A DNA stretch of 63,789 nucleotides, filler included, from Platydemus manokwari (lineage: Eukaryota): NCBI GenBank assembly GCA_037951405.1. It is 6 parts of 6 records of this genome, joined end to end, with 100 filler letters (N's around TTAATTAATTAA, not from the genome) between each part and the next. Parts side by side here need not be neighbours in the genome. Positions count along the whole stretch, not along the records: positions 18,789 to 31,827 come from JBBMOY011869165.1; 5 more parts are not named here. One strand, 5' to 3'. Under the pieces are notes generated by a model. That model was not told where the DNA came from and did no database searches. It saw only the letters and a program-made list of their open reading frames with translations. A program made the translations under genes and the position numbers. Positions 25,204-25,590 of the stretch are shown here, piece after piece. Each line of letters begins with the position of its first letter. Position 1 is the stretch's first letter.

Positions 25204-25590
25204 TTAAGGTTTCATACTACTCGAGCGTCCACCATTTGGATTCGAACTGCTGAATCGTCCACCATTTGGATTCGAACTGCTGAACCGTCCAATATTTGGA
25301 TGGGAACTGCTAAATCGTCCACCATTTGGATTCGAACTGCTGAACCGTCCAATATTTGGATGGGAACTGCTAAATCGCCCACTATTTGGATTCGAACTGC
25401 TGAATCGTCCACCAATTGGATTCATGCTAGGTCTTATAGTTCCAAATTGACGTACATTTCGTTCACCTTCATTATCATCTCTCTTTGTATTTGCCTCATC
25501 GTTACTGTTTTCGTCATCTCTTCTCCGATTTGCTTCAACACTTAGATATGTTGCAAAAACACATAACAAAAGAAATGAGCTTAATTTCAT
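25204..25590 (-). CDS. 128-aa secreted multi-copy peptide precursor (signal peptide, acidic pro-piece, tandem FSSS(N/H)PN(G/I/S)GR cassettes)
   Basis: Intronless ATG-to-TAA ORF. Signal MKLSSFLLLCVFATYLSVEA; RRR and KR basic sites in an acidic spacer; Gln after NVR; seven GR motifs at 10-aa spacing. TATAAA about 30 nt upstream (25621-25626, minus strand) and AATAAA downstream. A paralogue is present at 31048-31275. Confidence 0.88.
   Translation of the reverse strand: MKLSSFLLLCVFATYLSVEANRRRDDENSNDEANTKRDDNEGERNVRQFGTIRPSMNPIGGRFSSSNPNSGRFSSSHPNIGRFSSSNPNGGRFSSSHPNIGRFSSSNPNGGRFSSSNPNGGRSSSMKP
25225..25424. repeat. Coding 30-bp tandem repeat (~6.5 units) with a 60-bp higher-order dimer
   Basis: Unit cgtccaccatttggattcgaactgctgaat alternates with the variant cgtccaatatttggatgggaactgctaaat. 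25261-25317 is identical to 25321-25377. Confidence 0.95.

Follow-up and report, generated by a model that had tools for sequence, protein, structure and literature searches.

A candidate gene for a small secreted multi-copy pre-pro-peptide within a decaying local gene cluster of Platydemus manokwari

Background

Which product, if any, is specified by a short minus-strand open reading frame (ORF) that combines a putative signal peptide with a 30-bp tandem repeat? This question is raised by positions 25204-25590 of a 63,789-nucleotide stretch of Platydemus manokwari DNA (assembly GCA_037951405.1; six joined parts, hereafter the window). The piece analysed comprises ~13 kb around the ORF (window positions 18,789-31,827, from JBBMOY011869165.1). 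The explanation preferred here, at a probability of roughly 0.4, is that the ORF represents a young and intronless gene, restricted to its lineage, whose small secreted pre-pro-peptide product would be cut into amidated peptides.

Architecture of the predicted precursor

An earlier note on this DNA had described the minus-strand ORF as consisting of a signal peptide, a pro-piece, a Gln-initiated peptide followed by Gly-Arg, six cassettes and a tail, and re-translation reproduced this anatomy exactly:

25204-25590, minus strand: intact single-exon coding sequence (CDS) of the pre-pro-peptide, with ATG start and stop codon (128 codons plus stop)
25531-25590, minus strand: signal peptide, amino acids (aa) 1-20, with a Lys-containing n-region, a hydrophobic core and, ahead of the predicted cut, V-x-A
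25450-25530, minus strand: pro-piece, aa 21-47, with nine D/E and the convertase-type motifs RRR, KR and terminal RNVR (RxxR)
25405-25449, minus strand: first, diverged unit, a Gln-initiated 13-residue peptide followed by Gly-Arg; its internal Arg precedes Pro
25225-25404, minus strand: six 30-nt cassettes, aa 63-122, each coding for an octapeptide plus Gly-Arg
25207-25224, minus strand: six-residue C-terminal tail, from translation
25200-25205, minus strand: AATAAA hexamer overlapping the stop codon, a candidate polyadenylation signal
25621-25626, minus strand: TATAAA, 36 nt 5' of the ATG, of presumed function and canonical in the intact copy only

The proposed signal peptide is credible both by a hydropathy heuristic (Lys2, a peak of 2.8 in the Kyte-Doolittle 9-residue window, V-x-A before residue 21) and by the confident helix that AlphaFold predicts over the first 20 residues (pLDDT >90). 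In the case of the pro-piece, which had been regarded as acidic, the nine D/E as well as RRR and KR were recovered, but a strongly anionic character was not: 9 D/E stand against 7 K/R, leaving the intact pro-piece weakly anionic with a net charge of about -2. The C-terminal 81 aa contain 8 R and 1 K but no D/E (pI 12, net charge +9), the GRAVY of the mature part is -1.05, and Cys is absent from residues 21-128. Residues 46-128 are modelled by AlphaFold without secondary structure (pLDDT <50) and are predicted to be disordered.

One cassette ends in NS-GR, two in HPNI-GR and three in NPNG-GR, and each of the seven unit boundaries of the intact protein carries Gly-Arg without exception. Tandem Repeats Finder reports a 30-bp period with 6.6 copies at 25226-25423. 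Units 2 and 4 are nucleotide-identical, as are units 3 and 5, indicating that the last expansion step was a 60-bp, i.e., higher-order, duplication.

Coding status and constraint

The ORF has a GC content of 40 % within a piece of 23.4 % background GC and, its antisense shadow aside, is the only ORF of >100 aa in the 13 kb. In 400 Markov simulations of a 13-kb background, the longest ATG-initiated ORF averaged 76 aa (95th percentile, 102 aa) and reached at least 128 aa once. Since five of the six frames are open across the repeat, the length of the ORF is on its own only moderately significant.

The minus-strand frame is nevertheless backed by three independent coding signals: (i) codon-position GC, with GC1/2/3 values of.41/.54/.26, GC3 (.26;.19 outside the repeat) lying far under GC1 (.41-.44), (ii) a synonymous excess among the six units, which differ by a minimum of 5 synonymous vs 3 non-synonymous changes on ~6.7 vs 23.3 sites (Fisher p = 0.007), and (iii) a third-position excess relative to a degenerate paralogue (copy 2, see below), with 16/13/26 differences by codon position over 70 aligned codons (p = 0.013). 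That this looks like a real minus-strand coding sequence, as the earlier note took it to be, is supported by all three. The unit sequence is under constraint: Phe1, Ser4, Gly9 and Arg10 are preserved via differing codons, variation being confined to positions 5 and 8. Coding indels between copies 1 and 2 are multiples of three and stay in frame.

Two antisense frames are open, at 25117-25545 (plus strand, 142 aa, TTG start) and at 31028-31243 (plus strand, 71 aa, ATG start). Lying opposite copies 1 and 2, respectively, these frames are open as a by-product of the repeat and of codon bias on the sense strand, and they are not open consistently from one copy to the other. Antisense coding was rejected for want of an ATG and because the frame is broken in one or the other copy.

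Copies of the gene

Copies were located by tblastn and by self-blastn of the 13-kb piece. Copy 1, the intact gene with its flanks, extends over about 1.7 kb (24245-25935); its promoter-proximal part and the two further copies are as follows:

25612-25935, minus strand: upstream block of copy 1, ~320 bp, common to all three copies, a candidate promoter
31051-31296, minus strand: copy 2, a degenerate paralogue 5.7 kb away, with 82 open codons in the homologous frame and no in-frame ATG
30443-31625, minus strand: duplicated segment holding copy 2, matching 24245-25935 with 73-80 % identity
28991-29430, plus strand: copy 3, an inverted remnant restricted to the upstream block, with 86-90 % identity to copy 1

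In copy 2, the encoded hydrophobic core is shortened and a single repeat unit is complete, and its translation shares 57 % aa identity with copy 1 over 70 residues. Its damage amounts to one start loss, with neither internal stops nor frameshifts; two of the three cleavage motifs of the pro-piece are lost, and Gly-Arg occurs at two places. No coding sequence follows the upstream block of copy 3. Thus, three copies (one intact, one start-less, one promoter-only) lie within 7 kb, and the ATG, the canonical TATAAA and all convertase motifs are kept by the intact copy alone: the locus is a small birth-and-death cluster with one intact member. Since copy 2 holds a single full unit in the same open frame, the repeat array must have expanded inside an existing CDS rather than being a satellite open by chance.

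In all three copies, one and the same frame of the shared upstream block stays open over 49-58 codons (25656-25829, minus strand; 29250-29396, plus strand; 31394-31552, minus strand). Differences between copies 1 and 3 in this frame are distributed 4/5/8 over the codon positions and thus show no bias. An upstream coding exon at 25656-25829 (minus strand) was dismissed on account of the missing ATG and codon-position signal, and the block is probably non-coding promoter sequence.

Search for relatives

The gene is an orphan. Neither the protein nor the two-copy alignment retrieved anything in a word-index homology search, PDB sequences yielded no match, metagenome and viral contig scans by protein revealed no relative, and a full-text literature search for the peptide motifs found none. 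Exhaustive phmmer comparison with 1.84 billion representatives returned 62 matches, all of them unrelated period-10 low-complexity or junk ORFs that align to the repeat only, none of the 62 covering residues 1-57. An 18-nt DNA pattern derived from the repeat gave 18 chance matches in unrelated contigs of 32-63 % GC. No Pfam family scored above cut-off for the protein or for the 36 other stop-to-stop ORFs of the 13 kb. The absence of a match to a known family, as claimed in the earlier note, is therefore upheld by word-index, phmmer, Pfam, PDB, contig and literature searches. The same note had named a match to a described family or to a transposon-derived repeat as a result that would speak against its proposal; the searches returned neither. 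A transposon carrying the gene was likewise discarded, as there are no terminal inverted repeats around the duplicated unit and no transposase. Judged by these sequence comparisons, the protein belongs to no described family, its architecture as a multi-copy pre-pro-peptide being of an already known kind.

Proposed maturation

From the motifs present, we infer secretion, every cleavage step, amidation and a biological role as follows. The signal peptide would be removed after residue 20, and furin/prohormone-convertase-type enzymes would cut the pro-piece at RRR, KR and RNVR; all three motifs fit convertase specificity, and RNVR directly precedes the Gln. These cuts would discard short acidic fragments and free the basic, disordered 81-residue repeat domain, which in turn may be cut after Arg at each of the seven Gly-Arg junctions. 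A cut at the internal Arg of the first peptide is unlikely, since this residue sits before Pro. Provided that an amidating enzyme is present, trimming of Arg and conversion of Gly to the amide would leave a single 13-mer amide with N-terminal pyroGlu, six octapeptide amides representing three different sequences, and the six-residue tail. Predicted [M+H]+ values are 808.358, 887.437 and 838.369 for the octapeptide amides and 1399.715 for the pyroGlu amide. The products may act as secreted signalling or defence peptides.

Such a pathway, leading from convertase via carboxypeptidase and amidating enzyme to glutaminyl cyclase, has been described, as have convertase cleavage at single R, multi-copy units ended by Gly-Arg and products of 4-10 residues (PMC9545775). 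Monobasic Arg sites are also used in insect precursors (PMC7179676).

Comparison with known systems

The placozoan and cnidarian RWamide/RFamide preprohormones (PMC9545775) resemble the predicted precursor in possessing a signal peptide, many near-identical short units ended by Gly + Arg, no folded domain, products of 4-13 residues and a Gln-initiated peptide able to cyclise. There is, however, no sequence similarity, and no orthologues were found. In addition, the units studied here have an Arg on either side, nothing protects the N-terminus of the octapeptides, FSSS is invariant at the N-terminal end whereas the C-terminal residue varies, and the gene resides in a decaying local cluster.

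Multipeptide defence precursors with an acidic pro-piece, encoded in tandem clusters of fast turnover, include bee apidaecin, Drosophila Baramicin, nematode NLP/caenacin and Hydra arminin. Common to this group and to the present precursor are a signal peptide, an acidic pro-region with convertase sites, a basic, repeated C-terminal part, the occurrence of tandem duplicates with pseudogenes, and taxonomic restriction. In contrast, none of these proteins was returned by the searches, the mature part is here hydrophilic, Ser-rich and moderately charged, motifs of the Cys, Pro-Arg or Gly-Tyr type are missing, and the pro-piece does not balance the charge.

The PROSCOOP precursors of plant SCOOP phytocytokines carry a Ser-x-Ser-containing motif at the C-terminus in addition to a signal peptide and a variable region, and some of them have two copies of the motif (PMC8448819). 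The likeness to these small secreted precursors with signal peptide is limited to the three-residue motif; no search returned a match that would extend it beyond SxS, and a plant (Brassicaceae) origin is at odds with the composition of the present DNA, which is not plant-like. Since cnidarian/placozoan, defence, arminin and SCOOP families are all absent from the search matches, none is claimed as kin. Fungal systems were also considered and rejected: the units end in Gly-Arg rather than in the Lys-Arg of Kex2-processed repeat proteins and dikaritin precursors (ribosomally synthesized and post-translationally modified peptides, RiPPs), the lack of any Pfam domain in the 37 ORFs of the 13 kb leaves no recognisable tailoring-enzyme genes for a dikaritin RiPP cluster, and a TpA observed/expected ratio of 0.82 bears no signature of the repeat-induced point mutation (RIP) of fungal DNA.

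Weighing of the explanations

Several observations weigh against maturation into amidated peptides. At the Gly-Arg sites, P4, P6 and P8 are all occupied by non-basic residues, whereas monobasic convertase cleavage usually requires a basic residue at such an upstream position. No position of the unit varies more than the residue before Gly (G, I or S; N in copy 2), whereas amidated neuropeptide families usually keep their C-terminus conserved. Between copies 1 and 2, dN/dS amounts to 0.61, and the coding part and the flanks are equally similar (74 % identity in the coding part), so that constraint must be weak or confined to one of the copies. Orthologues were not found in any search, and the genome itself is apparently absent from the collections searched: exact-protein look-ups gave no record either for this ORF or for three other ORFs of the window, the latter pointing to a genome probably outside these collections, for which reason the missing orthologue means less. 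Finally, an orphan in a decaying cluster of fast turnover is more in line with defence or secretory peptides than with a conserved neuropeptide.

Alternatively, the secreted product may stay uncut at Gly-Arg, the 81-residue basic, Ser/Gly/Asn/Pro-rich, disordered domain acting as a whole after removal of the pro-piece. It could then belong to a rapidly evolving family confined to the lineage, with a role in defence or as a venom, salivary, glue or coat protein. We regard this as unlikely, yet as an explanation to be taken seriously in view of the orphan status, of local duplication with decaying copies as is typical of immune and secretory families, of the non-canonical monobasic Gly-Arg sites, of the variable residue that would be amidated, and of a predicted disordered domain with pI 12, net charge +9 and no D/E. 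What an uncut domain leaves unexplained is the strict Gly-Arg periodicity, kept through synonymous change; moreover, charge density is modest, GRAVY is -1.05, Cys is absent and no amphipathic helix is predicted. The earlier note had offered a variant in which an anionic pro-piece keeps the cationic domain latent, which is weak, because a net charge of -2 cannot neutralise one of +9. That the locus is silent, representing a decaying or non-functional remnant or else a de novo ORF kept open partly via the 30-bp repeat, appears doubtful. Two of three copies are dead, five of six frames are open in the repeat, ORF length is moderately beyond chance, no homologue was found and the protein is not on record; the dN/dS of 0.61 and a CDS conserved no better than its flanks also accord with silence. 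On the other hand, a silent locus would hardly account for the synonymous excess among units (p = 0.007), the third-position excess (p = 0.013), a GC3 well under GC1, the well-formed signal peptide, or the retention of ATG, canonical TATAAA and all convertase motifs in the intact copy alone. Cleavage after Asn by an asparaginyl endopeptidase to give cyclisable units, likewise raised in the earlier note, found no support, and together with kinship to, or mimicry of, SCOOP-type (SxS) plant peptides it is highly improbable. An Asn does precede the last variable residue of each unit, and the triple Ser trivially includes the SxS motif that defines SCOOP (PMC8448819). However, no such family emerged from any sequence search, a motif of three residues is too short to test, a CpG observed/expected ratio of 1.04 at 23 % GC is not plant-like, and neither Cys nor any other cyclotide-type feature is present.

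Under the preferred explanation of a secreted precursor cut into amidated peptides, one may go further and speculate that the gene is the founder of a hitherto undescribed signalling-peptide family, consisting of three octapeptide amides starting with FSSS and the pyroGlu 13-mer amide, of recent origin in an AT-rich invertebrate lineage and shaped by intragenic duplication under purifying selection. This extension is rather improbable; if true, it would represent a multi-copy peptide-hormone gene caught in the act of birth. Expression and processing of the precursor would in any case add a peptide family without known relatives, and its dead neighbour copies show the order of events, from a single-unit ancestor via repeat expansion within the CDS to duplication and decay, which bears on the origin of lineage-specific signalling or defence peptides. 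If unprocessed or silent, the locus would be another orphan small secreted ORF, of which there are thousands in invertebrate genomes.

Neighbourhood of the gene

The 3' flank of the intact gene contains a 174-bp direct repeat (24594-24766 and 24871-25044) with 95 % identity and a 277-bp period. A single stretch homologous to this repeat region is found in the flank of copy 2 (25016-25075 matching 30839-30891). Four occurrences of the 11-mer TTCGAATCCAA fall within the repeat units (25236-25396), one within the unit of copy 2 (31083-31093) and one within the 3' flank of copy 2 (30852-30862), i.e., 6 matches vs 0.6 expected.

The upstream blocks of copies 1 and 3 point apart over ~3.2 kb (25936-29116) and are accompanied by a second inverted pair (26367-26442 and 28991-29066). 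The inverted pairs suggest an old head-to-head duplication, the right-hand coding sequence of which was later lost. The spacer between the inverted promoter copies contains an ATG-initiated ORF for a Lys/Glu-rich protein of 80 aa (27957-28199, plus strand), which is of chance-level length for its composition, has sub-threshold Pfam matches only and is not on record as a protein.

As no Pfam match above cut-off was obtained for any of the 37 ORFs, no neighbouring gene or transposon can be named; transposon ORFs were not seen in the 13-kb piece, Rfam and tRNA scans of the 13 kb revealed no RNA genes, and a bacterial promoter/terminator scan of the locus was uninformative. The composition of the piece (23 % GC, CpG and TpA observed/expected ratios of 1.04 and 0.82, respectively) suggests AT-rich, essentially unmethylated eukaryotic DNA and speaks against vertebrate, plant or RIP-mutated fungal DNA. 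Aphidiine parasitoid wasps, with 23.8-25.8 % GC, near-absent methylation and many orphan genes (PMC7257214), have a comparable composition. Nothing resembling human or viral sequence was seen, and many short AT-rich tandem repeats occur in the piece.
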